64,000 nucleotides of DNA from Leucoraja ocellata (GCA_036785375.1 JAWMAR010000471.1:1240001-1304000); one strand, 5' to 3'. Counted from the stretch's first letter, positions 1,122-59,732 are shown. Notes: a model not told the origin generated them from the sequence alone. A program made the numbers and translations.

Positions 1122-1427
1122 ATTCGATGTCCGCGGTTTCCCAGAGTACGCCTCAACAATCCTCTCTTTCTGGTGACACTGCCACCCTTAACTGCGTATA
1201 TTCCGGAATCTGCTCGTACACAGTACACTGGTACCGACAGTTCCCAGGGCAGGCTCTGGAATTCCTGCTCCAAAGACACATTTCAGGAAAGCAAGATGAG
1301 GAAGCGGCTGCCGAAGGTCGTATTTCTGGTTCTCTCGATCCTGCCCAGAAAATCAGTCAGTTAACGCTCTCTGAGGTTCTGCCGAGCGACGAGGCTGTGT
1401 ATTACTGTGGGATGAGTCCGCGCATCG
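1122..1427 (+). CDS. TCR V exon (V1), TCR-delta type; probable NAR-TCR supporting V
   Basis: Acceptor tttttccacag ends at 1121, phase 1. Open frame (D)SMSAVSQSTP...TATLNCVYSGICSYTVHWYRQFPGQ...DEAVYYCGMSPRI with canonical Cys/Trp/Cys plus an extra CDR1 Cys, followed by a 23-RSS. Confidence 0.92.
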
Positions 1428-1466
1428 CACAGTGGCACAGCGCAGTGAGATAGCTGTACCAAAACC
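1428..1466 (+). promoter_or_regulatory. 23-RSS of V1
   Basis: Heptamer CACAGTG 1428-1434, 23-nt spacer, nonamer ACCAAAACC 1458-1466 (one mismatch to ACAAAAACC). Confidence 0.95.
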
Positions 1467-1634
1467 TCAGCGTGGCGGGATACAGGCACACAGCACTGCA
1501 GAACATCTGGGGCGCTAACCGAGAACCTCAGTGTAGTATGGATTGTTTACACGTTGCCACGGAAGGAAAGAAAGAAAACATTACAAAGATAAATTATGTT
1601 GAAACTTACAGAAACACAATTAGTCTGGGAAGAG

Positions 1635-1865
1635 NNNNNNNNNNNNNNNNNNNNNNNNNNNNNNNNNNNNNNNNNNNNNNNNNNNNNNNNNNNNNNNNNN
1701 NNNNNNNNNNNNNNNNNNNNNNNNNNNNNNNNNNNNNNNNNNNNNNNNNNNNNNNNNNNNNNNNNNNNNNNNNNNNNNNNNNNNNNNNNNNNNNNNNNNN
1801 NNNNNNNNNNNNNNNNNNNNNNNNNNNNNNNNNNNNNNNNNNNNNNNNNNNNNNNNNNNNNNNNN
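1635..1865. other. assembly gap
   Basis: run of N. Confidence 1.
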
Positions 1866-2376
1866 TCCGACGCTGAGAAGTTTCGAAACGCCCGTTCAAA
1901 AGTTTTTGTCGGAGGGAAGAGGTACAGAGGCAGCGAGAGTTCGAAGTCTGACCTAACGTCGGACTGCGGAAACTTTCCATTTTAAAGGATATCTCCATTC
2001 AGTGCGGGAATTCCAGCGCTTTTATGGAGGGCAGCGAGAGCAGCAGTGGCTGGTGGATTGCCACTCGTACCTGGTGACCGGGAGTCGGAAAGTGTCGGTG
2101 TTTATATCGTTTCTAGCACCATAACCCTGCTCCCATACCGATGTGCCCAGAGCAGGTCGCCGGGGTTTAAACGAAGAGAAGGTACTTATCGAATCCGGCA
2201 GATTTCTGACGCTCGGAAGGCCTGAGATGCCTCCCAAGAGATGCTCTCGGCAGAGAAAGTGGGCGTGGGGGTATTTACTTGCTCGGCTGGAGAGAAAAGC
2301 ATCTGCTGAGAGTGACTTACAGATCGCTCTTGAGCTGATACTGCTGTTATCTGCGGTGCTGGTGTGTAGCCCTGTC

Positions 2377-4298: not shown

Positions 4299-4498
4299 NN
4301 NNNNNNNNNNNNNNNNNNNNNNNNNNNNNNNNNNNNNNNNNNNNNNNNNNNNNNNNNNNNNNNNNNNNNNNNNNNNNNNNNNNNNNNNNNNNNNNNNNNN
4401 NNNNNNNNNNNNNNNNNNNNNNNNNNNNNNNNNNNNNNNNNNNNNNNNNNNNNNNNNNNNNNNNNNNNNNNNNNNNNNNNNNNNNNNNNNNNNNNNNN
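4299..4498. other. assembly gap
   Basis: run of N. Confidence 1.
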
Positions 4499-4563
4499 TT
4501 TGTATTTTCACAAACATCCGATAATCAAACCACTCACGTGTTGTAGTGATATTATTTTAATGA

Positions 4564-5471: not shown

Positions 5472-6399
5472 CTGGGAAGGAATAAAAACATAAACTGGTG
5501 AATTGTGTTGGGGTTTGCGACGGTGGATGAGGGTTATTTAAACGTGCGCATATTTGGGACGATCAACCATCAAAGTTGTCTATAAAGATGTTCACTCGTC
5601 AGCAAATGATTAAAGACCTGATTACCAAAACTCGTGAAATTTGAATGAATGAACTTTATTGTCATTCAGATATACACCTAGACACAGTGCACCTTGAACG
5701 AAATGTCGTTGCATTTGACTCTCCAAAATCAGGTAATAGTAAAAAGTGCTAGGTGCGTCCATAAAAAATGCCTCATGTGCATAGTTCTGTAAAATAAATA
5801 TGTATACAAAGTTTTTAAAAAGTGTCGATATTTAAAAAGTTCTAGCCTCGGGTTTGTTGATTGTTCAGTAATCTTATGGCCTGGGGATGAAGCTGTTGCA
5901 GAAATTGCTGTTTCTATTTATCTGCACATATTTATGCCAACCGTTTAATATTGATGTTTTGTTACCCCTGCATGATCGTGGCAGCTGCAGTCTCTGTTAT
6001 ATGTCCTTCAAAAACCTATCTTAAAATTGCCTTCCGACCTGAGGGGGAACATGACTGGTTGTTCAACTTTTGTTGAGTAAGTTGTTCATGCGATCTTCAA
6101 ATCAGTCTCTGCGAAAATAACCCTGTGGAATGTTATGAGTTTTACATAAAAGGCTGTGCCAAGTTACGGGACGGGGTGGGTTTTTTTTCTTCTTTCTTTC
6201 TAGGGAGTGCACTACGGAACAGGTAGTCCCACACACAGCGAGGACGCCGTGTCGCGTGCTCCACCAACAGCGCAGGTGCATCGGTTGTAGCCCAAATCCG
6301 TGGAGGTTAAATTTGTACCTGAGTCTATGAGAGGCCCTCTCCATTTTCGGTGATGGAATTTTTTCAACTGGGTGAGAAGTTCTGTACACGGGTAAAACT

Positions 6400-6457
6400 T
6401 TAATACACCAACCCAACAACTAGAATATTAACAAATCACATGTTATCAACTAAATTT
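6400..6457 (+). mobile_element. L1-clade LINE, 5' piece upstream of the DIRS insertion
   Basis: Reads RILTNHMLSTKF and continues in frame into SRCCRQGCPLSP at 11255 once the DIRS is removed. Confidence 0.75.
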
Positions 6458-9400
6458 AATAGTAAGATTAAACGAGAACTTACCAGTTTGAAGTTTGATC
6501 CGTATTTTATGAGGAGTTACGATGAGGGATTACGTGAAGAACCCGCCTCAGGACGCATGTGCGGCATACTTCAAAGCAGCGGTGTGGAATCACAGATAGA
6601 CACAAGTATTTGAAGTAACATAGTAAAGACAAAGAGACATCAATTTATCAGTTTGATCCATATAATGAGGGTGGGAGCGGAGGGCACGTAATCCCTCATC
6701 GTAACTCCTCATAAAATACAGATCAAACTTCAAACTGGTAAGTTCTCGTTTAATCTTACTATTTTACTTCGGAGTCACGTGAGTGACTACGTGAAGATTT
6801 CAAAGCTTCTGTGATTTCAAACCGTGTAACAGCTTTATATCACTCACTGCCGAAGTCTTTGAGGGAGGAAATGTGTTACCGTAATCAACCAATGAATCTG
6901 TTTATAGAAAAACAATGGTATTTTTACAGTAACAATGAAGAAATTTAAATTCTCCCCTGGGCTAATTTAAATATTTGCAGATTGGAATCTTTCCTGCAAA
7001 TAAAAACAGGTTTTGTCAACAGTTTATAATAAATTATTTCTCTGAACGTTTTACCCCCATCATTCTGCTGTAGCCAGGATGTGGTTTATAGGCACGTCCA
7101 TTCTTTTGCCGTTGACGTGGAAGCTTGTCCTGTGGAATGAAAAACTTTGTACATGTTAGTTTTATCCCAGGAGCTTTAATACCCGCTTGAGCCACCCCAA
7201 AAAAGGCTCGTTACCCGACCACGAGGTTTTTTTGTGACCAACCCACAAGGCTTTTCATCTCCCTCGAATATTTAGGTTGTGTCTATGTAAGGTAACAGGG
7301 TCATGGCACATTACCGTGTTTTCTGGCGGATAAGCCCGGATTTTATGACTGGATAAGGTGTTCCTGGTCTGGTTTGGCCATTCCCTGGACAATGATAGAG
7401 ATCTGGTCTGAAGCTATGAGCATGGTGTCCAGTTGCAATAGGAGTAGTGACTGGACCCTCTGTGCTGCTCCATGTGCCTTCAACATATGTATTTAGAGCA
7501 TAGAAGGTTCAGGTTAAGGGATCTGGCTGGTGGGTATCCCCTGAGGAATGGTTGTACCACTGTGACATCCCATATATGGGTGTACCTGGTCTAGTGGTTT
7601 AGAGTTTTAATAACCTTCAAAGATTTACCACCAGCCAGTGACCCCATGGCCTGTTGTCCTGTAGCTGTTTTGAAACAACAGGCAGGGCAATTCTAGCTGT
7701 GTTGATGGTACTGTAGCCGAATCCTTCATTGTGATGAAGGTTCTCCAGGAATTCCAGTTCGTAGTAACTGAATCAGTTGAGTAGGTTATCCCTGTATCCT
7801 TGCAGTACTTCTCTTGATGCTGGGCAAGTGCTGTAGTCCAGTGGATGTTCAGAAATATGCTGACATGGTGTCGATGGTTCAGTATAACAATCCCAGTCCC
7901 ATATGAGGCTTGTGCAGAGTCTGCAACCCAGGAGCTTGATTTCCCATGGCACAGATGACTTGTGCCCGGCTCCGAGTGTTAATAATTCTGGGTACTGGGA
8001 AATACCATCCAAGTTTCAACAACCATGTCATGGCGTATAGTGAACAATGGCTGCGTAAGTCCGTCAGGTACTATCAAATACCTGAAGCAGAATCCTTTTG
8101 TACTGTGCGTAGTCCTCGATTGGTGTGGCAGAAGGGAAGAAATACATAGAAATAATTTCACCAATGCAGCGCGAACGCATTTGTCTATGGATTATTATAA
8201 ATACATTCTTGATTGACAACATGACCTGTAGGTCAGAAAAGTTATAATATATAGCTGACGAGCTTTCTGCTGGTAACTATCTGTCCCAGAGAAATTGGCA
8301 ATGAAGAGTCCACTGCCCCATGGTCTGGTTTCCCTCGCGACATACATAGGACATCCCCAAACACCTGGTGATATAGCGTTGATGCAGATAATCGATATCA
8401 GATTCAGATTCAATTTTAATTGTCATTGTCAGTGTGCAGTACAGAGACAATGAAGTGCATTAATATCTGGTGCGTCATATAGCTTGATAGTTTTGTTAAA
8501 ACTTTTTGTTTTAATTTTTTTTTAATAAAAACATCTAATTGATGTTGTCCTTAAATTTATGTGACCTGGTGTCTGTCACTGTATTTTGCTTACCTGGCAG
8601 GTAAGTTGCTGATAGTCAAATACATGTTTGGACACACCATTGCCAAATTGTTTTGACCAACTTGTCATATGATACCGACTTTATGCTGCCCATATGGTTA
8701 ATGTAGGCCATCTCCGTAGTGTAGTCTATTTATAACCGTACATGCAAGTGCTTTAAAACCCATAAAATTCACCCGAACATTTTTTAGATAATTAATGCCC
8801 AGTATAAGTGGTAACCCCACCACTGTATTTCTGATATTACTTCAGTGGGTAACTTCATGAGATGGTCAATGACAACCTATATGTTGTTTTTGATACTAAG
8901 GTCTGAATCATGTAGACAGAAATGCTACCATTTTCCCAATTACTCTGTTACTTGTCGAGTAGTTGGTAGTTTGTTTACCATTAATTTGTTGCTTGTTTGT
9001 GCCAATTCAACTATGTTGTCTCTTGGCAACATTATAGTTACGTGGACTGAATTAATATGAAACCCAAGTTAGTCCAGGAAAGAGCTCTATATGCTGGTAG
9101 GAACCAGACCCACCTACCTCCATGGTTATTGGCGGTTTTGTCTTTTCTGTTTTCTGAGTGCTTTTGTTCTGACGACGTGCTGGCGACGTTGGGGGGAGGC
9201 GCATTTTCCAGGGGGTCCGCGGCGGGCCCTGATCTAAAAGACCTTTGGGGATAATGCGGCCCCAAGCGTTCACCAGTCCCATATTCTAGACGTCGACTGG
9301 TGGATGGCGTGGGGTGCTGCTGCTTGGGTATCGGAAGTCGTGGTTTGCTCGTCCCGGGGCCTGCCCTCATGATGCCGAAGGTTTTTGATGCCTCTTCCAT

Positions 9401-11254
9401 CTCCTTCAGTTTTTTGTTGAGATCTCTCCCAAATAGCAGTGAGTCTGCCTCCGCAGCTGGGGCTTTACTCAAGCCTGCAAATTTTGAGATTGAGGGCAGG
9501 TCTTATATTTCCCTCCGGAGATTGTTTAGTTCAAATTGTGTGGTACACCTTAATACCAGCACTTCCTGCTGGTATGTGTTCACCTTCGTTGTCTCCATAG
9601 AACGAGCATAGGCTGTGATAGCTGACGTCAGGAGCCTTCGGATCCGCTGTAGCTTGAGTTTCTATGCCCGCATAAGGGACCCCACATTCGCAGATTTTGC
9701 TGTTGAGGCTTTTTTCCCCTTAAGGGCCTCACAGTTCTCTGGTGCTGTATATTCTTGCAGCACCTCGGCGAGCACCTTCTTCAGTAGAGGTTTGTTGGAT
9801 AGGTGGTTAATACTGGCTGCCATTTTTTGGCTCCAGCGGTGCTCCAGCCCGTGGGGTTGCTACGAAGCGGTCCACCACACCCAACAGCTGTTCCTGATCC
9901 TGCACCCCATGCATACTCCCGATTTTGTCCGCCTGTCCCATTTCCAGACCAGCCCTGCCCTGGTCACCAATGCTAGCCTCCTGCTCCAACCCGTGGTATG
10001 AGGGTAGCAAAGGGCAGTGCCTGACACGACACTATGGAGGAGGTGCCTGTCCTGTCTCGCCCGGAGCGCTGCTGTTCCCGGTGGACCTTCTCCTCCAGGA
10101 GCTGCTAAATGCAGCTCAGGCGGCTGTCTCTCTCTGCTTTGGTGGAGACATGTCCCCCTCCGACGAATCGGAGACGACCCGCCGTTTGGCTTCCTGGCCG
10201 CTTTCCCAGTCCGCCGTGCAGGCTCTGGCGAGACTGGGCTTGGCTCGGTCTCAGGGATAGCGAAAACCGCTCTGCGAGCGACGCTGCCACCGGTTGCAGC
10301 CCCGCTGGTAGAGTTGGAGCGGGGCAGTTTCTCTTTGCGAGTTTTTTGCGTTGTGTTCCTGAAACCTGCAATAAAACACAACTGCAAACTCATCTTTCCA
10401 ATGCCCAAGAGCCGCTCCTGCAGCTCAGGCGGTTGTCTCTCCCCCTCCTGGGTGGAGAGACGTCCCCGTCCGATGTCGGCACCACCGGCCGGTTTTACAT
10501 ACATCCAGCCCGCTGCTCAGGCGCTAGCGGGCTGGGCTCGGTCGCGGTGTCGGGTTAGCGGACCGCCCGCTAACCGGTCCTACCGCCTGTTGCTGCCCAA
10601 TGTCCTCCGTCGAGCGGGCAGGTGCAGCATTTTCCCCAGCCCGCTGCTGAAGTGCTGACGGGCTTGGTGCAGTGTCGGGAGCGGGGCGCTGATTAGCGGT
10701 CTTCGCTCTCTCTCTCTCTCTGCACTCGGGCTGCTGCTCTCCTGCACTCGGGCTGCAGCGCACTCCACGCCAGCACTGCGTAGTGGGTCCCCTCAACGGC
10801 TCCGAATGGTCGGAAGCCTCCGCCCGTCCGCCTGCCTGCCTCACCTGGCCAGTACTCGAGGGCGAGCGAGGACTGAGGGGAACCTCCAACGCAGTGCAAG
10901 CGCCGTCTTCCTGCGCTCTCTCTCGATGTCGCCCCTGTGGAGTTTACCGGCACCGGCACAGCTCCCATCCATGGTCCGCCGTGAGTGCGGTCCTGGTGGC
11001 GTCTTTCCCCCCCTCCCGCGAAACGGAAAACTCCTCCCGGAGTCCAAGGGGGCCGCTTGCATGCTCTGTGGGGAACAAGCAGACGCGAAGGGGCTGTTAA
11101 AATAAAGGTAAGTACTTACCTAAAGCTTAGTTTTTCTGGTTGCTGCGGGAGCCCTGTCTCCCGCCTGCCGCTGTTGCCTGCTGAAACGTAATGCCGCACA
11201 TGCGTCCTGAGGCGGGTTCTTCACGTAGTCACTCACGTGACTCCGAAGTAAAAT
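6458..11254 (-). mobile_element. DIRS1-like tyrosine-recombinase retrotransposon, internally deleted and degenerate
   Basis: Inverted repeat 6531-6567 / 11191-11227. Internal complementary region 6685-6797 matches both termini. gag-like remnant (LLFGRDL, 9038-9472), RNase H remnant (IDYTTEMAYINHMG...YLPGKQN, ~8560-8745), recombinase HST(R)-like remnant ~7100-7145. Confidence 0.92.
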
Positions 11255-12539
11255 TGATCTAGATGTTGTAGACAAGGATGCCCGCTATCTCCGTTATTGT
11301 TCGAACTCGCTATTGAGCCATTTGTTGAAAGTGTTGGGGCCCATCCAGAAATATACTGGTATAATACTAAAGGCACTGTGAATAAAAATTATTTATATGC
11401 AGATGATGTATTAATTTACAATACAAAACCAGAAATTAGTATCCTAAACTTATTAAATCTAATAACTCAGTTTGGTTTGTTTTCTCGATACAGAATTAAT
11501 TGGAATAAAAGTGAAATCATGCCATAACGGAACTTAATCCACATATAATACATCAATCCCCGTTTAAAATAGTTAATGAAAAATGTTAATATCTGGGAAT
11601 TTATGTCACTAAGACATATGCTTCGTTATTTAAATTAAATTTCTCCCCTTTACTGAATAAACTACTCAAGAATATTCAGTATTGGCAAACATTCCCTATT
11701 TCAATGTTTGGGAGAATTAATGTCATAAAAATGATTTTTTGCACCGCAATTATTATACATCTTTCAATCAAACCCGATATATCTTCCTTTTTATTTTAAA
11801 GGTGGACTCCATCGTCACTGATTTTATCTGGGATTATAAGAATCATAGAATAAGCAAAAAAACTTTTATGCAAATCAAAGACAAATGGAGGTTTAGCTTT
11901 ACCGAATTTTTTGTTTTATTTCTGGGCAGTTAATATTAAAAATATGAACTTTTGGCTGGAAGAAATGGACCAACAACCAGATTGGTTAAAGATGGCAAAG
12001 GAAGATTGTTTACCTTTTGAAATTGGTTCGATTCTGCTTACTACCTCAAAATTGAATTAAAAAACTTACAGGGAAAATCCTATAGTATACAGTGGTATGC
12101 GAATTTGGAAACAATTAAAAAAGACCTTAAAATAGTATAATGAATCACTCTATCTCCCCCATCGTGAACAAACCCTCGTTTAAACATTCTATGTTCGATA
12201 AAGGTTTCATACAATGGAAAAATTATGGAATTAAAAGGATGGGACAACTTTTTTAAGAAAGGCATCTTTCTATCATTTCAGGAGCTACAACAGACTTACG
12301 GACTCCACTGGAATGATTTTTTTTTAGATATTTACAACTTAGAGATTATGTTAAATCATATACACAAAACCTTGGAACTAGAGATCCGGAAATTATTGAT
12401 GATTGTTTGAATAAACATCCTAATACAGATAAATTAATATCTCATATTTATAATATCCTATTAGATAGTGAGATACCACCAACGGATGTATATAGAGAAA
12501 TATGGGAAAATGAACTAACCCAACCAATAACGAAAGATA

Positions 12540-12732
12540 CACAAAACAGCTGGAGAAACTCAGAGGGTGCAGCAGCATCTATGGAGCGAAGGAAATAGGC
12601 AATGTTTCGGGGCCGAAACAGGCCCGAAACATTGCCTATTTCCTTCGCTCAATAGATGCTGCTGCACCCGCTGAGTTTCTCCAGCTTTTTTGTGTACCTT
12701 CGATTCTCCAGCATCTGCAGTTCCTTCTTAAA
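12540..12732. mobile_element. Palindromic Penelope-derived repeat with 15-bp target-site duplication
   Basis: Inverted arms of about 70 bp centred near 12615; caataacgaaagata at 12525-12539 and 12733-12747. Confidence 0.7.
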
Positions 12733-13343
12733 CAATAACGAAAGATATTTGGGATGAAAGTTTACAACATATGCATCAATGTTCATTAAATCCCAGACAC
12801 TCTTTAATACAATTTAAAGTACAGCATAGATTATATTACTCCAAAACAAAACTAAATGGAATCTTCCCACATATCTCTCCTATCTGTGATAAAAATCAAC
12901 ATTTAGAGGCTAACCTAACTCACACATTAGCAAACTGTTTAAAAATCAAAAGCTTCTGGACGGAGATTTTTAGAATAATATCTATAGCTGTCAACACTCA
13001 ATTGGATCCCGATTTAAAACTAATAATACTAGGAATATCAGAACAAAGCCTAACATTTACAACAACCCAAAGAAACGTTATCGATTATACTGTACTAACT
13101 GGGAAAACATTAATATTAACCTCTTGGAAAGGTCCTATAACCACCACAATTAAAATGTGGATTGTAGAAATGTCGGAGACCTTACATTTGGAAAGAATCA
13201 GACTTGGCTTAGTGGACAAACAAGAACTTTTTTTTATCAGAATATGGTCTCCATTCATTGACTACGTGAAGGGGCAGACGGGCTCGGCACGTGAACCTGA
13301 CTGTAACCCGAAGTAAGTAACTAACTTCGAAGTAAGTAAGTTA

Positions 13344-13726
13344 AACTTACAAAATTCTTAAGGGGTTGGAGAGGCTAGATGCAGGAAGATTGTTCCCGAT
13401 GTTAGGGAAGTCCAGGACAAGGGGTCACAGCTTAAGGATAAGGGGGAAATCCTTTAAAACCGAGATGAGAAGAACTTTTTTCACACAGAGAGTGGTGAAT
13501 CTCTGGAACTCTCTGCCACAGAGGGTAGTTGAGGCCAGTTCATTGGCTATATTTAAGAAGGAGTTAGATGTGGCCCTTGTGGCGAAGGGGATCAGAGGGT
13601 ATGGAGAGAAGGCAGGTACGGGAAACTGAGTTGGATGATCAGCCATGATCATATTGAATGGCGGTGCAGGCTCGAAGGGCCGAATGGCCTACTCCTGCAC
13701 CTAATGTCTATGTTTCTATGTTTCTA
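13344..13726 (+). mobile_element. CR1 3' fragment, (ctatgttt)n-tail family
   Basis: [18 protein letters not shown]...VNLWNSLP, 3' hairpin and tail. Confidence 0.9.
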
Positions 13727-14051
13727 AGGATTAGATGAAAGGTTTCACTTTATAATTTACGAACTTATCTCCAACGTTGTATTTTTAGTAAATTATTCCA
13801 TTCTACTCTATCATGCTTTTTCCTTTTTTTTTAATTTCTCTTTCCTATTTTCTATCTATATAAAAAAAATACTAGAAGCAGTTAATATCAATCGATAATA
13901 TTAGTAATGTAGGAATGATATACATGAAATGTTTTTAATATGATATGTACCTGCCTCTAAAAGCTTATTTAAAAAAAAAGAGTCGATGAGAAGCCACCCG
14001 TCAAAGAAGACAACGCGTTTCCTCTCTCCCAAGATGTACATTGGCTTATTT

Positions 14052-14940
14052 GAGTTTAGTTTAGATGTACAGCCCCGAAGCGGATCCTCCGGTCCATCGA
14101 GCCCGCGCTGACCAGCGATCCCCGCTCACAGTTTAAGGATAAGGGGGTAATCTTTTAAGACCGAGATGAGGAAAACATTTTTCACACAGAGAGTGGTGAA
14201 TCTCTGGAATTCTCTGCCACAGAAGGTAGTTGAGGCCTGTTCACTGGCTATACTTAGGAGGGCGTTAAATGTGGCCCTTGTGGCTAAAGGGATCAGGGGA
14301 CAAGCTTTTCCCTTTGAGAATAGGGAAGATTCAAACAAGAGGACATTACTTCAGAATTAAGGGACAGAAGTTTAGGGGTAATATGAGGGGGAACTTCTTT
14401 ACTCAGAGAGTGGTAGCGGTGTGGAATGAGCTTCCAGTGGAAGTGGTGGAGGCAGGTTCATTGGTATCATTTAAAAATAAATTGGATAGGCATATGGATG
14501 AGAAGGGAATGGAGGGTTATGGTATGAGTGCAGGCAGGTGGGACTGAGGGAAAAAAAAGATGTTCGGCATGGACTTGTAGGGCCGAGATGGCCTGTTTCC
14601 GTGCTGTAATTGTTATATGGTTATATGGTTATATGGTAGGGGGAGAAGGCAGGTACAGGATACTGAGTTGGATGATCAGCAATTATCATATTGAATGGCG
14701 GTGCAGGCTCGAAGAGCCAAATGGCCTACTCCTGCACCTATTTTCTACGTGTCTATGTTTCTAACAATATCCGACACACACTAGCGACTTAAACCAAATA
14801 TATACCAAATCAATTAACCTACAAACCTGTCTGCCTTGGGGAGCTGGAGGAAACCGAAGATCTCGGAGAAAACACGCGCTGAACCTACAAATTCGGTAAA
14901 GACAAGCAACAGTAGTGGGAGCGAGCCCTGCACCATCTAC
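14052..14940. mobile_element. Nested repeats: minus-strand SINE split by two plus-strand CR1 3' fragments (14126-14762)
   Basis: SINE halves at 14052-14125 and 14763-14940; one CR1 family (14299-14636) lies inside the other. Confidence 0.8.
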
Positions 14941-15064
14941 CGCTGAGACTTCGTGCAGCCCTTGACCCTGCCGGGTTATTCCGTTTGTTCTCTTCATCTT
15001 TACTCCTCTGCGCTTTTGCAACCTGTCTTTGTATGTTCAATGAGATGTGCCGACAATTACCTAC

Positions 15065-15134: not shown

Positions 15135-15394
15135 TTTAATTCGACGGTCTCGGCGATCACTCCTGGTGCTGCCACTCAGCGTTTGTCAGCGAAACAAACC
15201 AATCTCTGGCACATTTATAAAGTAAATAAAAGGGAAAACAGGCAATTAGGTAACATCCCTGTGGACATTACAAACAGACTTTGGAACAAACAAGTACTGT
15301 TTTCAATGTAATATTCAGAAATCACAATCATGCCGGCGACCGCTCCATACATTTCCAACAGCAGGCAGTGAACGGGTATGGACTGGCACAAGAT

Positions 15395-21500: not shown

Positions 21501-21782
21501 ACTGGAGCATCCAGGACTCGGTGGCACAGTCGGTCTCTGAAATGACGTTCGCAGTTAAAGATGACATCGCGCTAGAATGCTCCTTTGGAACGGCAGGGAC
21601 AATCCTGAATGTTTATTGGTACAGACAGCGACGTGGGCGGCAGCCAGTGATCCTGTTTCGGATTACGGCAAGGATACTAAAGAGAAATGGGGATCTCACA
21701 GACCGATTCTCTTCCACGTACAATAAGGCTGCAAAAACCTTATTAGGTTAATCATCCGCGCGTCCGAGATTACCGACTCCGC
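21501..21782 (+). pseudogene. TCR alpha/delta V pseudogene (V2)
   Basis: Acceptor ttactgttag. (D)WSIQDSVAQ...ALECSF...VYWYRQ...RFSSTYNKAAKT, frameshift near 21740, then RLIIRASEITDSA; the YYC motif is missing. Confidence 0.9.
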
Positions 21783-21821
21783 CACGTTGCCGAAGAAACA
21801 CGGCGGACACGCACAAAAACA
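21783..21821 (+). promoter_or_regulatory. 23-RSS of V2
   Basis: CACGTTG 21783-21789, exactly 23 nt, ACAAAAACA 21813-21821. Confidence 0.8.
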
Positions 21822-27229: not shown

Positions 27230-27272
27230 ATGGAAATGCTGCTTGCTTGCATATTTTGTGCATGTTTATTCC
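27230..27272 (+). CDS. Leader exon of V3
   Basis: MEMLLACIFCACLF then C|GTAAGT; phase 1; paralogous to 35002-35044. Confidence 0.9.
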
Positions 27273-29102: not shown

Positions 29103-29412
29103 GACAGGGCGCTGGGAATTCGATCACTCAGACCGAGTCTTTACTGAGACAGGGAAAAGATGAATTGGTGAAACTAACCTGCACCTACAATACTGCAGCA
29201 CACACGTATTGGTTATATTGGTATCGACAAATTGCCGAGGAAAATCCTGAGTTTATTGTGATGATACGATCTTGGGACCATCGGGAAACATCGGGAGACA
29301 TATTAGAGAAACGCTTCTCCATGGATCTCCAGACAGCGACTTCATTTGTCCATTTAACTATCTGGGGCCTCCAGCTGACAGACTCTGCAGTCTATTACTG
29401 CGCCCTGAGTTC
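29103..29412 (+). CDS. TCR delta/alpha V exon (V3), intact
   Basis: Acceptor tctatttcacag. (R)QGAGNSITQ...VKLTCTY...LYWYRQ...RFSMDLQ...LTDSAVYYCALS, open frame. Confidence 0.95.
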
Positions 29413-29451
29413 CACAGTGATTGGAAGCAGTCTCTGCGCAGTGCAATAACC
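29413..29451 (+). promoter_or_regulatory. 23-RSS of V3
   Basis: CACAGTG 29413-29419, 23 nt, GCAATAACC 29443-29451. Confidence 0.93.
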
Positions 29452-35001: not shown

Positions 35002-35044
35002 ATGGGCATGCTGCTTACTTTCATCTTCAGTTCATGCTTATTAG
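35002..35044 (+). CDS. Leader exon of V4
   Basis: MGMLLTFIFSSCLL then G|GTAAGT; phase 1. Confidence 0.9.
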
Positions 35045-37043: not shown

Positions 37044-37353
37044 GGCAGGGCGCTGGGGATTCGGTCACTCAGAGCCAGTCTTCGCTGAGACATGGAAAAG
37101 ATGATTTGGTGAAACTAACCTGTAACTACAATACTACCGCGTCCGCCTATTGTTTATATTGGTACCGACAGATTGCGGCGGAGAATCCTGAGATGATTGT
37201 GCTGAAACAGTCTTGGGACCAACAGGAAGAACGAGGAGACATATTAGAGAACCGTTTCTCTGCGGATCTCAAGACTGCGACTTCAATTGTGCATTTAACT
37301 ATTTGGGGTCTCCAGCTGACAGACTCTGCTGTGTATTACTGCGCCCTGAGTTC
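37044..37353 (+). CDS. TCR delta/alpha V exon (V4), intact paralogue of V3
   Basis: Acceptor ccatttcacag. (G)QGAGDSVTQ...VKLTCNY...AYCLYWYRQ...LTDSAVYYCALS; 77 of 102 aa identical to V3 by hand count. Confidence 0.95.
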
Positions 37354-37392
37354 CACAATGATCGAAAGCAGTCTCTTCGTAATGCAAAAACT
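37354..37392 (+). promoter_or_regulatory. 23-RSS of V4
   Basis: CACAATG 37354-37360, 23 nt, GCAAAAACT 37384-37392. Confidence 0.92.
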
Positions 37393-38297: not shown

Positions 38298-38570
38298 TAA
38301 TGTTTGTTGCAGAATGTGCTCAGCTGGTGTACGCGTAATGTGCAGAGGACCTTACATTGATTGCTCACCATCACTGGGGAACGAAATATTGTTTTTGCCA
38401 AGACGCATTCGCGATGCTCGGGGGAAGTGGTCTAATTTTCCATTTAATTCTACTGTGTATTATTTAGAGTATAAATACACCAGCGTGTTTCATTTGGCTC
38501 ATGATCTGCCCGCGTCCAGTTACGTACAGGATAGACCACAGTTACGACCAAGAAGACGGAAATCTGAAAC

Positions 38571-38634
38571 ATGTGGCGGATACGGCGCATGGAATTCTAC
38601 TATTATCCAATTCTGGCTGCAATTGGAGTACCAG
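38571..38634 (+). CDS. GPCR-2 exon 1
   Basis: MWRIRRMEFYYYPILAAIGVP then G|GTAGGT; 64 nt, phase 1. Confidence 0.9.
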
Positions 38635-39282
38635 GTAGGTCAGGGGTGGCTTGTGTGGCGCGAATTCACATACGGTTCGAGGCTGTTTCTTATGTTTCAT
38701 GCCGGTTACGGGAAAATATTAAAGATAATGAGAAATGCTGCAAAGAAAATCTTCAACATGTTGCTTGGTGCCTGGTGGGAGTGAAACCACTGCGATGTTC
38801 GTCTACCGTCTCGTCTTAGGTCAAGATTTAAGAGTCAATGTTCATGAGTGTTTGCATGCCAAATGTACCTACAAGCGAACAATTAAATTCTCACTCAGCA
38901 GCAGCATCACATGCCTGTTGGCAAAATATACAGAGAATATTCAATAAACTAAAAACCCAAATCGTAGTTCAAAAATATAGTGATCTAAAGCCTGATAGGC
39001 TTTCAATTCTTGAAGCGAATGGCACCGGTTTTTATTACTCCTGCAATTTATTACAGATGGTAGGAGAGCGTGGCCAGCGTCATGCGGGTCTTTGGTCGGA
39101 TATAAGGAACATGAATATAATTATAGGCAGACAAAAATGCTGGGGAAACTCAGCGGGTGCAGCAGCATCTATGGAACGAAGGAAATGGGCAACGTTTCGG
39201 GCCGAAACCCTTAAAATTGGTTCTTGTTTTTCTTGCTCGAGAAGAGCTACCAGCTTTTGAAAGATTAGCTCTAACTTCAGAT

Positions 39283-39359
39283 CGGGATTCTAGCTCAGTG
39301 GCAGAGCGCATGCTTTGCATGTATGTGCCGCGCCACGTTCAATCGCTGACATCATCTCC
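39283..39359 (+). pseudogene. tRNA-Ala(TGC) pseudogene in the GPCR-2 intron
   Basis: gggattctagctcagtggcagagcgcatgctTTGCAtgtatg matches the 5' half of tRNA-Ala(TGC); T-stem and acceptor stem are disrupted. Confidence 0.8.
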
Positions 39360-40088
39360 CTGAGCTTTCCATGTGTTTTTTTTTCAGTAACGGGAAAAAG
39401 ATCGGCTATATCCCGCCAGATCAGCGAATGCACCGGCAAATGGCCGGCAAATGCCGAATTCCTGTTGTGCTGTGTCTCACTGAGTTGAGAAGTGGCAGTT
39501 CCGAGGGAATTGCTCTTTCTAGCCAGACGATCAGAACGTTTTCGTCAGGATTTTAATGTCAGACTAGAGCTCAAAAAGTTTAAAACGAGAGGGGCAAGAT
39601 TTTTCATCGTGGGTAGTTGGACCTGGGACTGGTAAGGGTAGCTATAATGGTCGAGGTTCAATAGCTTTTAGATAGGCACATGTATATGTATTGATTCGTG
39701 GTTCATAGATCACGCGAGGGCATTTGCGATTAGTTTATGTTCGCCACGTATTGTGTGGGACGAAGAGTCTGTTCCTTTGCTGTAGTGTTCTATATCCTAA
39801 GTTGCATACAATTCAGGTTTATCGGGTTAACCAGTTTAATTTATTGCCACGTGCACTGAGATATAGTGAAAGCATTGTTGTTGCGTACTAACCAGTCAAC
39901 AGAAATACGATATTGAATTACAATCGATCCATTTACAGTGTATAGATATCATAGTTAAAGTAAGACATGTTACTGTAGGAATTGAGATTTACGAGTGTAG
40001 AACGATTGTAATATATGTTTCTAGATCTGCTTCTGTGACTGGCACGCATATAGTCGCCTGTGTTGGATGCCAAGGCAAGACTCTCTGA

Positions 40089-40695
40089 CATAGAAACATA
40101 GACAGAGAAAATAGGTGCAGGAGTAGGCCATTCGGCCCTTCGAGCCTGCACCGCCATTCAATATGATCATGGCTGATCATCCAACTCAGTATCCTGTGCC
40201 TGCCTTCTCTCATTTAGCCACAAGGGCCGCATCTAACTCCCTCCTAAATATAGCCAATGAACTGGCCACAACTACCAACTACCTTCTGTGGCAGAGATTT
40301 CCACAGATTCGCCGCTCTATGTGTGAAAAATGTTTTTCTCATCTCGGTACTAAAAGCCTTCCCCCTTATCCATATACTGTGACCCCATGTTCTGGACTTC
40401 CCCAACATCGGGGACAATATTCCTGCATCTAGCCTGTCCAACCGCTTAAGAATGTGGTACGTTTCTATAAGATCCCTCCTCAATCTTCTAAATTCTAGCG
40501 AGTACAAGCCGAATCTATCCAGTCTATCTTCATATGAAATTCCTGACATCCCAGCAGTCAATCAGGTGAACCTTCTCTGTACTCCCTCTATGGCAAGAAT
40601 GTCCTTCCTCAGATAAGGAGACCAAACACTGTACGCAATACTCCAGGTGTGGTCTCACCAAGGCCCTGTACAACTGCAGTAGAACCTCCCTGCTC
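40089..40695 (-). mobile_element. CR1 3' fragment
   Basis: ORF2 end and tail. Confidence 0.88.
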
Positions 40696-41078
40696 CGTAA
40701 CCGACCTCTCGCTATAATCCAAGCCCGCAGTTCCAGTAAGATATTGGGAAATCACCTTTGCACTTTTTCCAACGCTAATGGCGTCCTCCCTGTAGTTCTC
40801 TGGGTGATTTCTCGCCGACGAATTGCACAACTGCATCAGAACTTTACCAGGTATGCCGTACTTCCTCACGTCACAGACGCCGGTGAACGAGTTGTTGAGA
40901 TTAAGTATGTTTGGCTGCGGGATCAGGCGCACAGCCGAGCCAATGGGGCCATTGACAGGGGCCACCGATACGGCTAAAAAGGCAACAGTATAATTGTATA
41001 ATACATACCCACAGCTAATTTTAGGTCATAAATTTATCATGCAATTGAACGTAATTATTTTTTTTTCTTTTCTCCCAG

Positions 41079-41992
41079 TGAACCTGGTTACCATTGTGAT
41101 CCTGTGTCGTGGAAAGTGCGGCCTCTCCAAATGCATCACCCGTTACCTGGTGGCCATGGCTACGGCGGACCTCTCGACGATCATAGGCAAGGTGCTGTTA
41201 GAGCTGGTTGCCGGAATCTATTGGAGGCACACATTCTTGTTCTACACTCCGGTGTGCAAGTCCATTATCTTCATGGCGGCCGTGGCTGTAGACTGTTCCG
41301 TATGGTTTACCGTGGCGTTCACGTTTGACCGCTTTGTAGCCATTTCCACCCTGAATATGAGAACCAGGTACTGCACCGGGAGAACCGCGGTGGTGGTTGT
41401 AGGGACATTGACCGCGCTCTTCTCTGTAAAGAACATCCCATGGCCCTTCGCGTACATCGGGTATTTAACATCTTCCGTTGGTCAACAAGGCTGCCTCCGT
41501 TCGCCGCATGTTTATACTCTGACCGGATGGGTGGCGTTTTCTGTGGCCGACCAATTGTTAACCCCAGGCATTCCGTTCTGTATGATTTTCTCCTTTAACA
41601 CCCTCACTATCAGATGCATTTTACAGGCCATTTGGATCCGCAGGAACCTCCGTGAACTGAGCAGCGCGGACCCGGAGACAGCGAACCGCAGGCAGTCCAT
41701 TATTTTACTCCTTGCAATCACTACTAGTTTTATCCTCCTCTGGGCGACAACAATCGCAGATTTTATTTACAATCATATTATACCATCACCTCATCGCGTA
41801 TCGTCGAGTAACAGTTTCCCATTGCTCCACAAAGTTGCTATTCTACTCCAGCTGTTCAGCACCTGCACAAACACGGCTATTTACACCATAACCCAGAGGA
41901 AGTTCAGAAAACAACTGCTCCAGGCATTGAAACTCCCATGCATTCTCATTACAAAATCGACGAAACCCATCCGAGCTAAAGTCTGTCAGTGA
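41079..41992 (+). CDS. GPCR-2 exon 2 (class A 7TM, GPR139/GPR142-like family)
   Basis: Acceptor ttttcttttctcccag. VNLVTIVILCRGKCGLSKC, MATADL, VAFTFDRF, NRRQSIILL, STCTNTAIY; spliced product 325 aa. Confidence 0.93.
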
Positions 41993-42117
41993 TTCGTTGC
42001 ATGTCAGAAGAAGGGTCTCGACCCGAAAGGTCAACCGTTCCTTCTCTCCAGAGATGCTGCCTGTTCCGCTGAGTTACTCCAGCTTTTTGTGTCTATCTTT
42101 GGCTCACGTAATAACTC

Positions 42118-42727
42118 ATAGAAACATAGAAACATAGAAATTATGTGCAGGAGTAGAGGCCATTCGGCCCTTCGAACCTGCACCGCCATTCAATATGATC
42201 ATGGCTGATCATCCAACTCAGTATCCCGTACCTGCCTTCTCTCCATACCCTCTGATCCCCTTAGCCTCAAGGGCCACATCTAACTCCCTCTTAAATATAG
42301 CCAATGAACTGGCCTCGACTACCCTCTGTGGCAGAGAGTTCCAGAGATTCACCACTCTCTGTGTGAAATAAGTTCTTCTCATTTCGGTTTTAAAGGATTT
42401 CCCCCTTATCCTTAAGCTGTGACCCCTTGTCCTGAACTTCCCCAACATCGGGAGCAATCTTCCTGCATCTAGCCTGTCCAACCCCTTAAGAATTTTGTAC
42501 GTTTCTATAAGATCCCCTCTCAATCTCCTAAATTCTAGAGAATATAAACCAAGTCTATCCAGTCTTTCTTCATAAGACAGTCCTGACATCCCAGGAATCA
42601 GTCTGGTGAACCTTTGCTGCACTCCCTTTATGGCAATAATGGCCTTCCTCAGGTTTGGAGACCAAAACTGTACGCAATGCTCCAGGTGTGGTCTCACCAA
42701 GACCCCGTACAACTGCAGTAGAACTGC
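42118..42727 (-). mobile_element. CR1 3' fragment
   Basis: 164-aa ORF2 C-terminus and tail. Confidence 0.92.
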
Positions 42728-51735: not shown

Positions 51736-51739
51736 TAAT

Positions 51740-54839: not shown

Positions 54840-54868
54840 CTGCAATAAAGAAGGGAGACTTCGGGTGA

Positions 54869-55962
54869 ACATAGAAACATAGCAAATAGGTGCAGGAGTA
54901 GGCCATTCGGCCCTTCGAGCCTGCACCGCCATTCAATATGATCATGGCTGGTCATCCAACTCAGTATCCTGTACCTGCCTTCTCTCCTGATCCCTTTAGC
55001 CACAAGGGCCACATCTAACTCCCTCTTCAATATAGCCAATATTGTAGCCTCAACTACCTTCTGTGGTATAGAATTCCACAGATTCACCACTCTCTGTGTG
55101 CAAAAAATGTTTTTCTCATCTCGGTCCTAAAAGATTTCCCCCTTATCCTTAAACTGTGACCCCTTGTTCTGAACGTCCCCAATATCGGGTACAATCTTCC
55201 TGTATCTAGCCTGTCCAACCCCTTAAAAATTTTGTAAGTTTCTATAATATCCCCCCTTAATCTTCTAAATTCTAGCGAGTACAAGCCGAGTCTATCCAGT
55301 CTATCTTCATATGAAAGTCCTGATATCCCATGAATCAGTCTGGCGAACCTTCTCTGTACTCCCTCTATGGCAATAATGTCCTGCCTCAGATTTGGAGACC
55401 AAAACTGTACGCAATACTCCAGGTGTGGGCTCACCAAGACCCTGTACAACTGCAGTAGAACCTCCCTGCTCCTATACTCAAATCCTTGTGCTATGAAAGC
55501 TAACATACCATTCGCTTTCTTCACTGCCTGCTGCACCTGCATGCCTACTTTCAATGACTGGTGTACCATGACACCCAGGTCTCGTTGCATTTCCCCTTTT
55601 CCTAGTCGGCCACCCTTTGGATAATAGTCTGCTTTCCTGTTTTTGCCACCAAAATGGATAACCTCACATTTGTCCACATAGGCACGTATGCGAAGTAAAT
55701 AGTCTATCTTCATATGAAAGTCCTGATATTCCATGAATCAGTCTGGTGCACCTTCTCTGGACTCCCTCTATGGCAAGAATGTCTTTCCTCATTAGGGCCA
55801 TTTAATCCACACTAGAAGCAAGGGGGAGTTCCCGACCTAGTCCTTGGCCCCGACATCGGGAACAATCTTCCTGCATCTAGCCTGTCCAACCCCTTAAGAA
55901 TTTTGTAAGTTTTTATAAGATCCCCCCTCAATCTTCTAAATTCTAGCGAGTACGAGCCGAGT
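54869..55962 (-). mobile_element. CR1 3' fragments in the GPCR-3 intron
   Basis: ORF 55084-55734; tail ends about 28 nt from the splice acceptor. Confidence 0.9.
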
Positions 55963-56477
55963 AAATAGTAATCAGCCGACAACTGTGCCAACTAACCCTA
56001 CAACATACCTGTATTTAATGCATGTACATTATCCGGCGCTTGAAATCTATCATATCACCTGTTTCGCATTCGCAGTCTAAAGAAGGTTCTCGATCCGAAA
56101 CGTCACCCACCGATTCCTGTTCTTCAGAGCAGCAATCGGACCGCCTGAGTTACTCAGGCATTTCTGTCTATCCTCGCCTTCGTACTAAATCGCTTTCCAC
56201 GCATATAATGTGCGTGTAGTTTCTCAGAAACAATAAATCAATTTGCTCTTCAAACTGGCAATCAACATTGGCAAGTATGCCATTCTACAATGCGGTGCCC
56301 CAGAATTAAGTTGGTTTGCAGAGCAGTGAGGAGCTAAAAGGGTTTAGACCACAGAACAACTGCCATAGCTGAACAAGCTACGTGGAAAAGTATTCAGCAA
56401 ACAATATATAGATACCGGGACGCAAGCACAAGCCTCCACATGGTGCATCTCGGGCAATGCTAATGACAGGAACTGTA

Positions 56478-58775
56478 TAGTATAATGTGGATAAATGTGT
56501 GGTTATCCACTTTGGTGGCAAAAACAGGAAAGTAGATTATTATCTGAATGGTGGCCGATTAGGAAAGGGGGAGATGCAACGAGACCTGGGTGTCATGGTA
56601 CACCAGTCATTAAAAGTAGGCATGCAGGTGCAACAGGCAGTGAAGAAGGCGAATGGTATGTTAGCATTCATAGCAAAATGATTTGAGTATAGGAGCAAGG
56701 AGGTTCTACTGCAGTTGTACAGGGTCTTGGTGAGACCACACCTGGGGTATTGCGTACAGTTTTGGTCTCCAAATCTGAGGAAGGACATTATTGCCATAGA
56801 GGGAGTACAGAGAAGGTTCACCAGACTGATTCCTGGGATGTCAGGACTTTCACGTGAAGAAAGGCTGGATAGCCTCGGTTTGTACTCGCTAGAATTTAGA
56901 AGATTGAGGGGGGATCTTATAGAAACTTACGAAATTCTTAAGGGGTTGGACAGGCTAGATGCAGGAAATTGTTCCCGATGTTGGGGAAGTCCAGAACAAG
57001 AGGTCACAGTTTAAGGATAAGGGGGAAAGGCGTGATATAGAACATGTCCGGACACGAGAAAGCAGAAGATATAGATACCGATTACATGTCCTTACCATCT
57101 GAAGCAACACCGTGGATATCAGACGCTTCACCGCAATGATTCGTTAATGAGGTACAAAGGCAAACAACAATGAACATTTTCCAAAAAAACAGAGGGAGAG
57201 TCAACGATTGGCGAAGAAGGGGAAACAATTCACACCCAAGGACAGCGCGCGGTCAACTCTCGCAACAAGCATACGCCAGCTGAATAACTCATTCGGAAAG
57301 CAGCAGAAAACGGGTAAATCCTGGGGAAATGTGACAATTCAAAGTATTCAGGGCTTCATCTGTAGGAAGTTGCAGCTGGTTTATACCGAAGAGAGACACA
57401 TGATGCAGTAGGAACTCAGCGGACCAGGGAACATCTCTGCATGAGGATGTTTAAGGATAAGGGGGGAAATCTTTTAGGACTGAGATGAGAAAAATATTTT
57501 TTACACAGAGAGTGGTGAATCTGTGGAATTCTCTGCCACAGAATGTAGTTGAGGCCACAGTTCATTGGCTGTATTTAAGAGGGAGCTAGGCGTGGCCCTT
57601 GTGGCTAAAGGGATCAGGGGGGGTATGGAGAGAAGGCAGGTACAGGATACTGAGTTGGATGATCAACCATTATCATAATGAATGGCGGTGCAGGTTCGAA
57701 TGGCCGAATGGCCTACTCCTGCACCTATTTTCTATGTTTCTATGTTTCTATGAAAGGAATAGGCGACATTTCGGGTCGGAGCCCTTCTTCAAACTGTTTT
57801 TCTTTTACACGGCAATGTGGCTGAACAAGGGTTCCGGCCTGTAACATGGAAAACGTGCAAACTCCACACAGACATCGCGCATAATCAGGATCGATTCCGG
57901 GTGTTTGGCGCCATAAGGCGGCAACTCTCCGCTGCTGTGCCACCCCAGATAACCAAATAATTTATCTGGTTATGATATACGGCAGCGGTAATTTGTAACA
58001 CCCCCTGGAAAGTAGATATAGTTACCGTTGGCTTTGATATCAGCATCGAACAGCACGCAAAGAAATAAGAGAAATACCGCGGTATCCTGAGCGCCGACAA
58101 CGTTAAGCAGAAACAAGAGATAAACAAATAATTAAAAATAGTGGAGGCAGGGGATTTGGGGAGAAGGCAGGAACGGGGTACTGATTGTGGATAATCGGCC
58201 ATCATCACATTGAATGGCGATGCTGGCTCGAAAGGCCGAATGGCCTCTACTCCTGCACCTATTGCACCAGACTGATTCCTGGGATGTCAGGACTTTCATA
58301 TGAAGAAAGACTGCATAGACTCGGTTTATACTCGCTAGAATTTAGAAGATTGAGGGGGGGGGGGGGGGGGATCTTATAGAAACTTACAAAATTCTTAAGG
58401 GGTTGGACAGGCTAGATGCAGGAAGATTGTTCCCGATGTTGGGGAAGTCCAGAACAAGGGGTCATAGTTTAAGGATAAGGGGGAAAATCTGTTAGGGCCG
58501 AGATGAGGAAAACTTTTTTCACACAGAGAGTGGTGAATCTGTGGAATTCTCTGCCGCAGAAGGTAGTTGAGGCCAGTTCATTGGCTATATTTAAGAGGGG
58601 GTTAGATGTGGCCCTTGTGGCTAAAGGGATCAGGGGGTATGGAGAGAAGGCAGGAACAGGATACCGAGTTGGATGATCAGCCATGATCATATTGAATGGC
58701 GGTGCAGGCTCGAAGGGCCGAATAGCTACTCCTGTACCTATTTTCTATGTTTCTATGTTTCTATTGTCTATCGTC
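56478..58775 (+). mobile_element. Several CR1 fragments (56478-57030, 57450-57752, 58140-58775) with a SINE piece at ~57845-57945
   Basis: ORF2 C-terminal peptides and tails. Confidence 0.85.
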
Positions 58776-59662
58776 TAAAGGCGATAGACAAGCACGGGAG
58801 GGTAAATAAGCATCGAATCTGTAGATAAGAAGGTCCACGAAAATGATAACTCGGCAATGATTCAGTACCCTCAATGGCATGATACATTTACCGCCAATAT
58901 ATTATAACAACATTCCAAATAATTGCACGAGGCAGCGGCTCAGGTAACATCTGCAGAGAGAAAAAACACGTTCTTGTTCCGACCGTTCCATATACTCTGA
59001 AGAAAGGTCCCGACCAGAACCGTTCTCTGTCCATTCCCTTCCACAGATGTTTCCCCCGGCCCATTGATATCTTGGTTAAAGCTTCTCCCATATCTGCACT
59101 CTTTGCAGTCCCTAAAATTAAATCAATTTACGTCAGAAAATGCTGCTCCCGGCTTTCATTTGAATCGAAGAAGAAGGGTTTCGGCGCGAAACGTTGCCTA
59201 TTTCCTTCGCTCCATGGATGCTGCTGCACCCGCTGAGTTTCGCCAGCATTTTTGTGTACCTCCGATTTTCCAGCATCTGCAGGTCCTTCTTAAACAAGGA
59301 GGATGGGGCAACAGTCCGGGAAATCGTAAAGTATGTCCATGAGAGGAAAACGAATCATTGAAAGGTTTCAGATCAACAGTTAAAGTGAAAATACCTTGAA
59401 AGCAGAAAGCATAAATTAAATGAGTGTGTCAATGATACACAGAGAGCAAGTGTCAAATTTCCTTGAGACCGGTCACGTTACTCAAGCCGGATTTTAGGCG
59501 AATAAATCAATGAACAAGCTGGGGAGAATCCTAGCACAGGAGCGGTAGCACCGCAAGGAATCTGGAAAGAAAACATTAACACAGAAAAAAATTGTAATCG
59601 TCAACTCAGCGCGGAGGGGTCTCTAACGTACACTACGCACGTTTAGCACTTCAAACGTCTAC

Positions 59663-59732
59663 CTGGAACTCCGAAGGCTGCAAGAACTGAATAATAGATG
59701 GCAAAGACCAGGCCATTTCCGGGTGCGTGCAT
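59663..59732 (-). CDS. GPCR-3 exon 1
   Basis: Reverse strand MHAPGNGLVFAIYYSVLAAFGVP then G|GTAGAC; 70 nt, phase 1. Confidence 0.9.

Follow-up and report, generated by a model that had tools for sequence, protein, structure and literature searches.

The window analysed here is a stretch of 64,000 nucleotides (nt) of the Leucoraja ocellata genome (GCA_036785375.1 JAWMAR010000471.1:1240001-1304000; one strand, 5' to 3'), in which three G-protein-coupled receptor (GPCR) genes lie interleaved with four variable (V) segments of antigen-receptor type. Intact, constrained and independently structured GPCR genes stand here between rearranging V segments on contiguous DNA. Along the window, which has a GC content of 45.7% and contains three runs of N, the order is V1(+), GPCR-1(-), V2 relic(+), V3(+), V4(+), GPCR-2(+) and GPCR-3(-). 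Searching the 64,000-nt window by tblastn with its own V and GPCR pieces, we recovered three GPCR exon-2 bodies, the three corresponding exon-1 pieces and four V-like bodies, and no further V or GPCR body at the threshold applied (E < 1e-3). Pfam assigned 7tm_1 to the exon-2 products of all three GPCRs (53, 50 and 62 bits vs a cut-off of 30.5) and V-set to V1, V3 and V4. Both searches agree with the order and orientation given in an earlier note made from the sequence alone, in which V2 had been entered as a pseudogene.

The three GPCR genes share one structure. Each consists of two exons with a GT donor, an AG acceptor after a pyrimidine tract and a phase-1 intron that follows ..G-V-P and splits a codon, as G/TG in GPCR-1 and GPCR-2 and as G/CG in GPCR-3 (the slash marks the intron). 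In the following lines, TM stands for transmembrane helix and LINE for long interspersed nuclear element.

15134-15065 (-), GPCR-1 exon 1, 70 nt from the ATG to a phase-1 GT donor
5472-15064 (-), GPCR-1 intron, ~9.6 kb, contains LINE pieces
5471-4564 (-), GPCR-1 exon 2, 908 nt from the C-terminal half of TM1 to the stop codon
38571-38634 (+), GPCR-2 exon 1, 64 nt with a phase-1 GT donor
38635-41078 (+), GPCR-2 intron, 2.4 kb, contains LINE pieces
41079-41992 (+), GPCR-2 exon 2, 914 nt with the stop codon included
59732-59663 (-), GPCR-3 exon 1, 70 nt with a phase-1 GT donor
54840-59662 (-), GPCR-3 intron, 4.8 kb, contains LINE pieces
54839-53917 (-), GPCR-3 exon 2, 923 nt with the stop codon included and with Arg in place of Trp 6.48

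Exons 1 and 2 were treated separately in every search, alignment, tree and fold and were never joined. Summing the exon lengths gives coding totals of 978, 978 and 993 nt, corresponding to 325, 325 and 330 codons plus stop, and none of the three frames contains an internal stop. Annotated homologues provide independent support for the splice. Their N-termini match the exon-1 peptides of the window (for example P0026 of A. radiata for GPCR-1 and P0128 of H. francisci for GPCR-3), and their junction residue is V in the clade of GPCR-1 and GPCR-2 and A in the clade of GPCR-3, just as the split codons predict; the L. erinacea and A. radiata homologues share both the N-terminal peptide and the junction residue with the window genes. 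The fragments in the introns were recognised as LINE-derived by RVT_1 and repeat matches. Complete frames of these lengths, an intron at one shared position after ...GVP and introns filled with transposable elements had all been described in the earlier note, and each of these points stands.

Three of the four V segments, V1, V3 and V4, are real V segments, as had been proposed; what we correct is their extent, V3 and V4 each having a leader exon that precedes the V exon by 1.8-2.0 kb. The segments and their recombination signal sequences (RSSs) are as follows, with CDR denoting complementarity-determining and FR framework regions.

1122..1427 (+), V1 V exon, starts at an AG acceptor, with an extra Cys in CDR1
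1428..1466 (+), V1 RSS, 23-nt spacer, 1 mismatch to the consensus
21515..21748 (+), V2 truncated V body, FR1 to early FR3, without the second Cys
21783..21821 (+), RSS-like site past V2, heptamer-23-nonamer, 3 mismatches
27230..27272 (+), leader exon of V3, 43 nt with a GTAAGT donor, 1.8 kb before the V exon
29103..29412 (+), V3 V exon, open, probably of TCR (T-cell receptor) alpha/delta type
29413..29451 (+), V3 RSS, 23-nt spacer, 2 mismatches
35002..35044 (+), leader exon of V4, 43 nt with a GTAAGT donor, 2.0 kb before the V exon
37044..37353 (+), V4 V exon, 75% protein identity to V3
37354..37392 (+), V4 RSS, 23-nt spacer, heptamer CACAATG, 3 mismatches

In translation, V1, V3 and V4 all have the invariant Trp (in WYRQ) as well as both Cys residues, the second of them within YYC. 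Scanning the window for RSSs with a 23-nt spacer gave five matches vs 0.79 expected, three of which are flush with the coding ends of V1 (1428), V3 (29413) and V4 (37354) while a further one lies past V2 (21783); the remaining match, at 12088 in the GPCR-1 intron, is probably a chance occurrence. The same scan found no 12-spacer RSS in the window and no RSS beside any GPCR exon, and the window yielded no D, J or C segment. The leader exons of V3 and V4 are homologous and belong to a split leader with a phase-1 intron, and for V1 no leader exon was found in the 1121 nt available upstream. Ranked against the Protein Data Bank (PDB), which is a weak classifier for such domains, V4 had human V-delta-1 and TRA as its top single-V solved chains. 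By the same weak classifier the top solved chains for V1 were antibody VH domains, closer than TCR V domains, and this ranking together with the CDR1 Cys and the missing upstream leader fits a V-delta of immunoglobulin heavy chain (IgH)-like or NAR-TCR-supporting type. A homologue search with the V4 exon returned two proteins only.

V2 is a truncated pseudogene that lacks the second Cys. Its body breaks off in FR3 and the FR3-CDR3 end is gone, and the RSS-like site persists 35 nt after the break. The introns between leader and V exon of V3 (27273-29102) and V4 (35045-37043) are, at 1.8-2.0 kb, far above the length usual for V genes, which is due to a repeat element inserted before the duplication that produced V3 and V4. 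This duplication accounts for one of the two cases of non-repeat paralogy inside the window: V3 and V4 share a common flank of ~1.4 kb at ~77% nt identity, including the old repeat insertion, in units ~8 kb apart. The other case is exon 2 of GPCR-1 and GPCR-2 (68% nt identity). We considered co-duplication of a combined GPCR and V cassette inside the window and rejected it, V3 and V4 having been duplicated without any GPCR.

The three runs of N lie as follows relative to the features.

1635..1865 (strand not applicable), assembly gap separating V1 from GPCR-1, within no feature and 168 nt after the V1 RSS
4299..4498 (strand not applicable), assembly gap on the 3' side of GPCR-1, 65 nt after its stop codon
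52860..53186 (strand not applicable), assembly gap separating GPCR-2 from GPCR-3, ~730 nt after the stop codon of GPCR-3, with simple GT/GC-rich repeat flanks

None of the three runs touches a coding exon or intron, so the reading frames are independent of the gaps. The same is true of the interleaving, because the N-free block of ~48 kb from 4499 to 52859 already holds GPCR-1, V2, V3, V4 and GPCR-2. The adjacencies that do depend on scaffolding are those of V1 with GPCR-1 (two gaps) and of GPCR-2 with GPCR-3 (one gap).

Each GPCR is preceded by a module of its own, in which a TATA box follows a TAAT-core site after 10-40 nt and which is placed 60-95 nt before the ATG.

15214..15249 (-), GPCR-1 upstream module, TAAT-core site then TATA box, ~80 nt before the ATG
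38432..38475 (+), GPCR-2 upstream module, TAAT-core site then TATA box, ~95 nt before the ATG
59788..59814 (-), GPCR-3 upstream module, TAAT-core site then TATA box, ~60 nt before the ATG

The pattern has four matches in the window vs 0.44 expected, a count that is illustrative only, and three of the four stand before GPCR start codons on the right strand. The fourth match (11392-11439, minus strand, within the GPCR-1 intron) is probably due to chance because no exon-1-like sequence comes after it.

The three receptors have diverged far from one another and have nevertheless retained the core class A residues. Pairwise protein identity is 41-50%, at a synonymous divergence (dS) of ~0.9-1.8 and a ratio of non-synonymous to synonymous divergence (dN/dS) of 0.30-0.46, where dS is saturated for the pairs that include GPCR-3. 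Residues N1.50, D2.50, D/R3.49-50, N7.49 and Y7.53 are retained in all three and are invariant or nearly so among 237 aligned members of the family. Given frames that have stayed open over such divergence, the dN/dS values and the core class A residues, the GPCRs of the window look selectively maintained, and the purifying selection suggested in the earlier note is supported. At position 6.48 of the 237 aligned sequences, Arg occurs in 10, one of them GPCR-3, Lys in one and Tyr in 38. The sequences with Arg or Lys 6.48 make up a batoid subclade consisting of GPCR-3 together with P0123, P0124, P0126, P0130-P0132, P0134, P0136, P0137 and P0146. As the substitution is common to the clade-mates of GPCR-3, it is a trait of the clade and not a lesion of the gene.

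The closest relatives differ between the three genes. GPCR-1 is 92% identical to a protein of L. erinacea and 89% identical to one of A. radiata (P0023 and P0026, both annotated as 'probable G-protein coupled receptor 139'), which are its direct relatives, and for GPCR-3 proteins P0123 and P0124 from these two species are clade-mates at ~70% identity. GPCR-2 has no relative above 59% identity among annotated proteins (best 58%) and sits on a long end branch (0.5). A tree built from 77 sequences (quick IQ-TREE run with SH-aLRT support) places GPCR-1 and GPCR-2 in one clade (support 99) and GPCR-3 in another (100); the three are old paralogues drawn from two clades.

The GPCRs of the window are class A (rhodopsin-like) receptors, as indicated by the 7tm_1 matches, the seven-helix fold and the core residues. 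The predicted model of GPCR-2 exon 2 (pLDDT 80.5, pTM 0.79) is that of a class A receptor with a seven-helix fold and a hairpin in extracellular loop 2. Its top 50 Foldseek matches are other class A receptors of peptide type and do not include GPR139, which this comparison does not distinguish from such receptors. The vertebrate odorant receptors (ORs) have an intronless coding region and are described by the Pfam model 7tm_4. Identity with this family was rejected, since the window genes match 7tm_1 only at E<=0.01 and all three have a coding intron.

Homologues are abundant in databases. GPCR-2 exon 2 retrieved 2038 proteins at E<=1e-3 (of 4274 candidates) and GPCR-3 exon 2 retrieved 1143 proteins at E<=1e-60 (of 3062 candidates), with many per species. 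Among the 120 matches listed per search, all named proteins come from sharks, skates or rays and nearly all are called 'probable G-protein coupled receptor 139'; the protein atlas only repeats this automatic 'GPR139' name, and NCBIfam has no match for the family. When we compared a profile of 44 family sequences with the PDB, human GPR139 (7vug, 9m42) was the best solved structure (6.4e-19, 71 bits, near full length), and the PrRP receptor came next with 54 bits. The alignment to GPR139 includes a shared YY..L...G.P.N motif, which in the window genes is split by the intron, the intron site falling inside the part aligned to GPR139 residues G-L-P-A-N. Also shared are D-R in TM3 and L-W-A in TM6. 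With a single window sequence as query, GPR139 was absent from the 47 PDB sequences found at E<=1, where CCK receptors ranked first. In view of this absence, and of 1143 homologues at E<=1e-60 with several to many in a species, we rejected orthology to GPR139. Whereas GPR139 is a single-copy gene, the family described here has more than a thousand members in elasmobranchs, and it differs from GPR139 in that, of 237 members, 187 have T instead of P at position 7.50 and 145 have T at 6.50. On the basis of the profile comparison, the window GPCRs are best described as a distant sister expansion of GPR139, kin rather than orthologue. The label 'orphan' given to them in the earlier note is apt insofar as they have no known ligand, but the family itself can be identified.

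Variability within the family is unevenly distributed. The extracellular half has a mean column entropy of 1.83 bits and the cytoplasmic half one of 0.95 bits (Mann-Whitney p=2e-16), a bias that is a frequent trend in class A families. A conserved cytoplasmic face combined with a variable extracellular half suggests that the receptors might signal through one shared G-protein pathway in response to many ligands, which may be sensory or of peptide or metabolite type.

In other batoids, the two clades to which the window GPCRs belong appear to share scaffolds or chromosomes as well. Members of both are found on sequences of equal length in L. erinacea (208,102 bp and 169,644 bp), A. radiata (59,888,763 bp), P. 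pectinata (57,793,762 bp) and H. sabinus (48,887,500 bp). A mixed GPCR cluster like that of the window would accordingly be a conserved feature of batoids.

For expression, we made use of four RNA raw-read runs carrying the same species label (tissue unspecified; 5-32% of each was read), which were mapped to positions 36900-42200. Depth is zero over V4 and over exons 1 and 2 of GPCR-2 in all four runs, a weak negative. Depth reaches hundreds to thousands on LINE-derived parts alone (37785-38315, 39024-39377, 40086-40793 and 42033-42200, in all four runs). These reads are mostly 95-99% alike to the window and are derived from copies elsewhere in the genome; with such identities in all four runs, the LINE family of the window is abundantly transcribed somewhere in the genome. 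Searching indexed RNA runs for GPCR-2 exon 2 found none that contains it. Of the words sampled from this exon, 0.90 are present in the Logan contigs of one run and 0.82 in those of another, although these runs are possibly the assembled sample. The zero depth shows neither silence of the GPCRs nor their expression in lymphoid cells.

Genes of other families inside TCR loci have precedents in mammals, and those named in the earlier note could be traced in the literature. In the available text of PMC4574546, human OR10G2 is placed between TRAV1-1 and TRAV1-2 and OR4E2 between TRAV1-2 and TRAV2, mouse Olfr1507-1509 are placed between TRAV1 and TRAV2, and the arrangement is given as conserved in sheep. 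The part of PMC8945572 available to us places trypsinogen genes inside the human TRB locus. The window resembles the OR genes among TRAV segments in that non-rearranging class A GPCR genes lie between V segments, in the window too probably those of a TCR alpha/delta locus, and would be deleted by use of an upstream V. It differs from this case in the receptor family, the genes here having two exons and matching 7tm_1 only, and in number and position, since mammals have two or three such genes at the far 5' edge whereas the skate window has three within 64 kb. With the trypsinogen genes it shares an unrelated multigene family within a rearranging TCR locus and variation in copy number; those genes, however, encode serine proteases and reside in a different locus (TRB). 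For elasmobranchs, a 2025 paper maps the TCR alpha/delta-IgH complex (PMC12227049), and the terms 'GPR', 'GPCR' and 'G protein' do not occur in its available text. Our full-text literature search found no description of the present arrangement, as the earlier note had presumed, and no published link of this GPCR family to sharks or to TCR loci.

Taken together, we consider it probable that the window belongs to the V region in a skate TCR alpha/delta locus and that it carries three intact, non-rearranging GPCR genes as passengers. GPCR-1 and GPCR-2 lie among V segments on N-free DNA, none of the three GPCRs has an RSS of its own, and each possesses its own ATG, splice sites and TATA module. 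Both the GPCR and the V family would have expanded by local tandem birth and death in one neighbourhood and thereby have become interleaved. The GPCRs are probably transcribed from their own promoters in cells other than T cells. In T cells, deletional joining of a V to (D)J would drop those GPCR copies that lie between the chosen V and J, and by analogy with the ORs among TRAV segments and the trypsinogen genes in TRB, this loss may be a by-product without designed function. Several observations speak against this interpretation or weaken the evidence for it. The dS values that enter the case for constraint are saturated for the GPCR-3 pairs; the RNA runs yielded nothing for V4 or GPCR-2, nor did the indexed runs for GPCR-2 exon 2; the three sequences that served to define the TAAT-core and TATA pattern are also those on which it was counted; and the sharing of scaffolds in other batoids was deduced from equal scaffold lengths instead of coordinates and concerns the GPCRs only.

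The alternatives differ in the role that they assign to the neighbourhood of GPCRs and V segments. In the earlier note the GPCRs had been proposed to form a repertoire functionally coupled to antigen-receptor rearrangement, in which V choice sets the GPCR copies that an allele keeps, the retained promoters come under the TCR enhancer and lymphocytes acquire a clonally variable set of GPCRs. The underlying bookkeeping is sound. All V segments are on the plus strand with a 3' RSS, which provides the geometry for deletion as long as D, J and C lie downstream; in that case use of V1 would lose all three GPCRs and use of V3 or V4 would keep GPCR-1. That the GPCRs are intact and constrained is also in keeping with coupling. 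Deletion, however, happens automatically to anything between V and J and is therefore no evidence of function, and if the window is J-proximal, almost every join of an upstream V-alpha to J-alpha removes all three GPCRs, so that a role in alpha-beta T cells is unlikely. In addition, each GPCR has its own conserved promoter module, V3 and V4 were duplicated without a GPCR, not a single read of the four RNA runs fell on GPCR-2, and the mammalian parallels, in the available text of the sources cited, are known only as interspersed genes. The proposed coupling is left without support, and we regard it as very improbable. We give slightly more credit, though still little, to the view that the passengers are in decay, the GPCRs being genes that died recently or are dying and have no present function. 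The zero depth on GPCR-2, its lack of a close orthologue (best 58%) with a long end branch of 0.5, and the lack of Trp 6.48 in GPCR-3 speak for this view. Against this, frames of 325-330 codons remain open with canonical splice sites, ATG and core residues at dS ~0.9-1.8 and dN/dS < 0.5, Arg 6.48 is a trait of the clade (10 Arg and one Lys among 237), and GPCR-1 is 92% and 89% identical to its orthologues in two skate genera. Least credible of all is an assembly artefact that has brought V and GPCR genes from different places together across gaps or through collapsed repeats. Three runs of N do lie between features and the region is rich in near-identical LINE pieces, yet five of the seven elements (GPCR-1, V2, V3, V4 and GPCR-2) are found within 48 kb without any N, and the Logan contigs of two runs contain most words of GPCR-2 exon 2 (0.90 and 0.82), with the reservation that these may stem from the assembled sample.

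The alternative that we rate highest, while still judging it unlikely, is that the GPCRs are chemosensory or stochastically chosen receptors of elasmobranchs that have occupied the TCR alpha/delta V region since ancient times and not by accident; V arrays could amplify the genes embedded in them, or a permissive chromatin environment common to both could be the cause. Stated in full, and with the same reserve, an undescribed GPR139-related repertoire, its signalling face fixed and its ligand face diversified, with over a thousand members sequenced in all species together, would have had a core cluster in the TCR alpha/delta V region since before the split of skates, rays and sawfish, would have been amplified together with the V segments as a counterpart to the ORs among mammalian TRAV segments, and would be a candidate for a 'missing' chemosensory repertoire. 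The family is indeed very large and fast-evolving with a variable extracellular half, a conserved TAAT-core and TATA module precedes each GPCR, and the two clades appear on shared scaffolds in four batoids. The canonical olfactory repertoires of the catshark are, moreover, tiny: the available text of PMC11979771 gives 2 OR and 6 OR-like, 3 ORA, 3 TAAR and 2 TARL genes and, in that text, does not mention the GPR139-like family. The same source, however, shows no GPCR in its top-50 list for 'brain & olfactory epithelium'. Support from RNA is also missing, with zero depth on GPCR-2 in four runs and no indexed RNA run holding it, extracellular variability is common across class A families, the promoter motif was found post hoc, and the V duplication in the window was not accompanied by a GPCR.

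If passengers of this kind are what the window holds, a curiosity of mammalian TCR loci, namely foreign multigene families among V segments, would also be known, with another receptor family involved, from the oldest jawed vertebrates alive today. Two questions would become testable as a result: whether V arrays act as amplifiers of embedded genes, and whether neighbourhoods of GPCRs and TCR V segments are ancient or convergent. A very large elasmobranch GPCR family, on which our literature search turned up nothing, so far exists only in the form of automatic 'probable GPR139' annotations, and because canonical olfactory receptors are very few in elasmobranchs, this family is worth studying.

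Two further observations concern the surroundings of the GPCR genes. Positions 10000-11000, in the GPCR-1 intron, form a GC-rich island (61-67% GC vs 30-45% around it) with long open reading frames in several frames on both strands; the one frame tested had no Pfam match. At 462-497 (+), a peptide resembles the exon-1 motif of the GPCRs (YYP.LA.I.VP; tblastn E=0.23) and is not followed by a GT donor, and this may be the decayed exon-1 relic of a fourth GPCR or a chance similarity.

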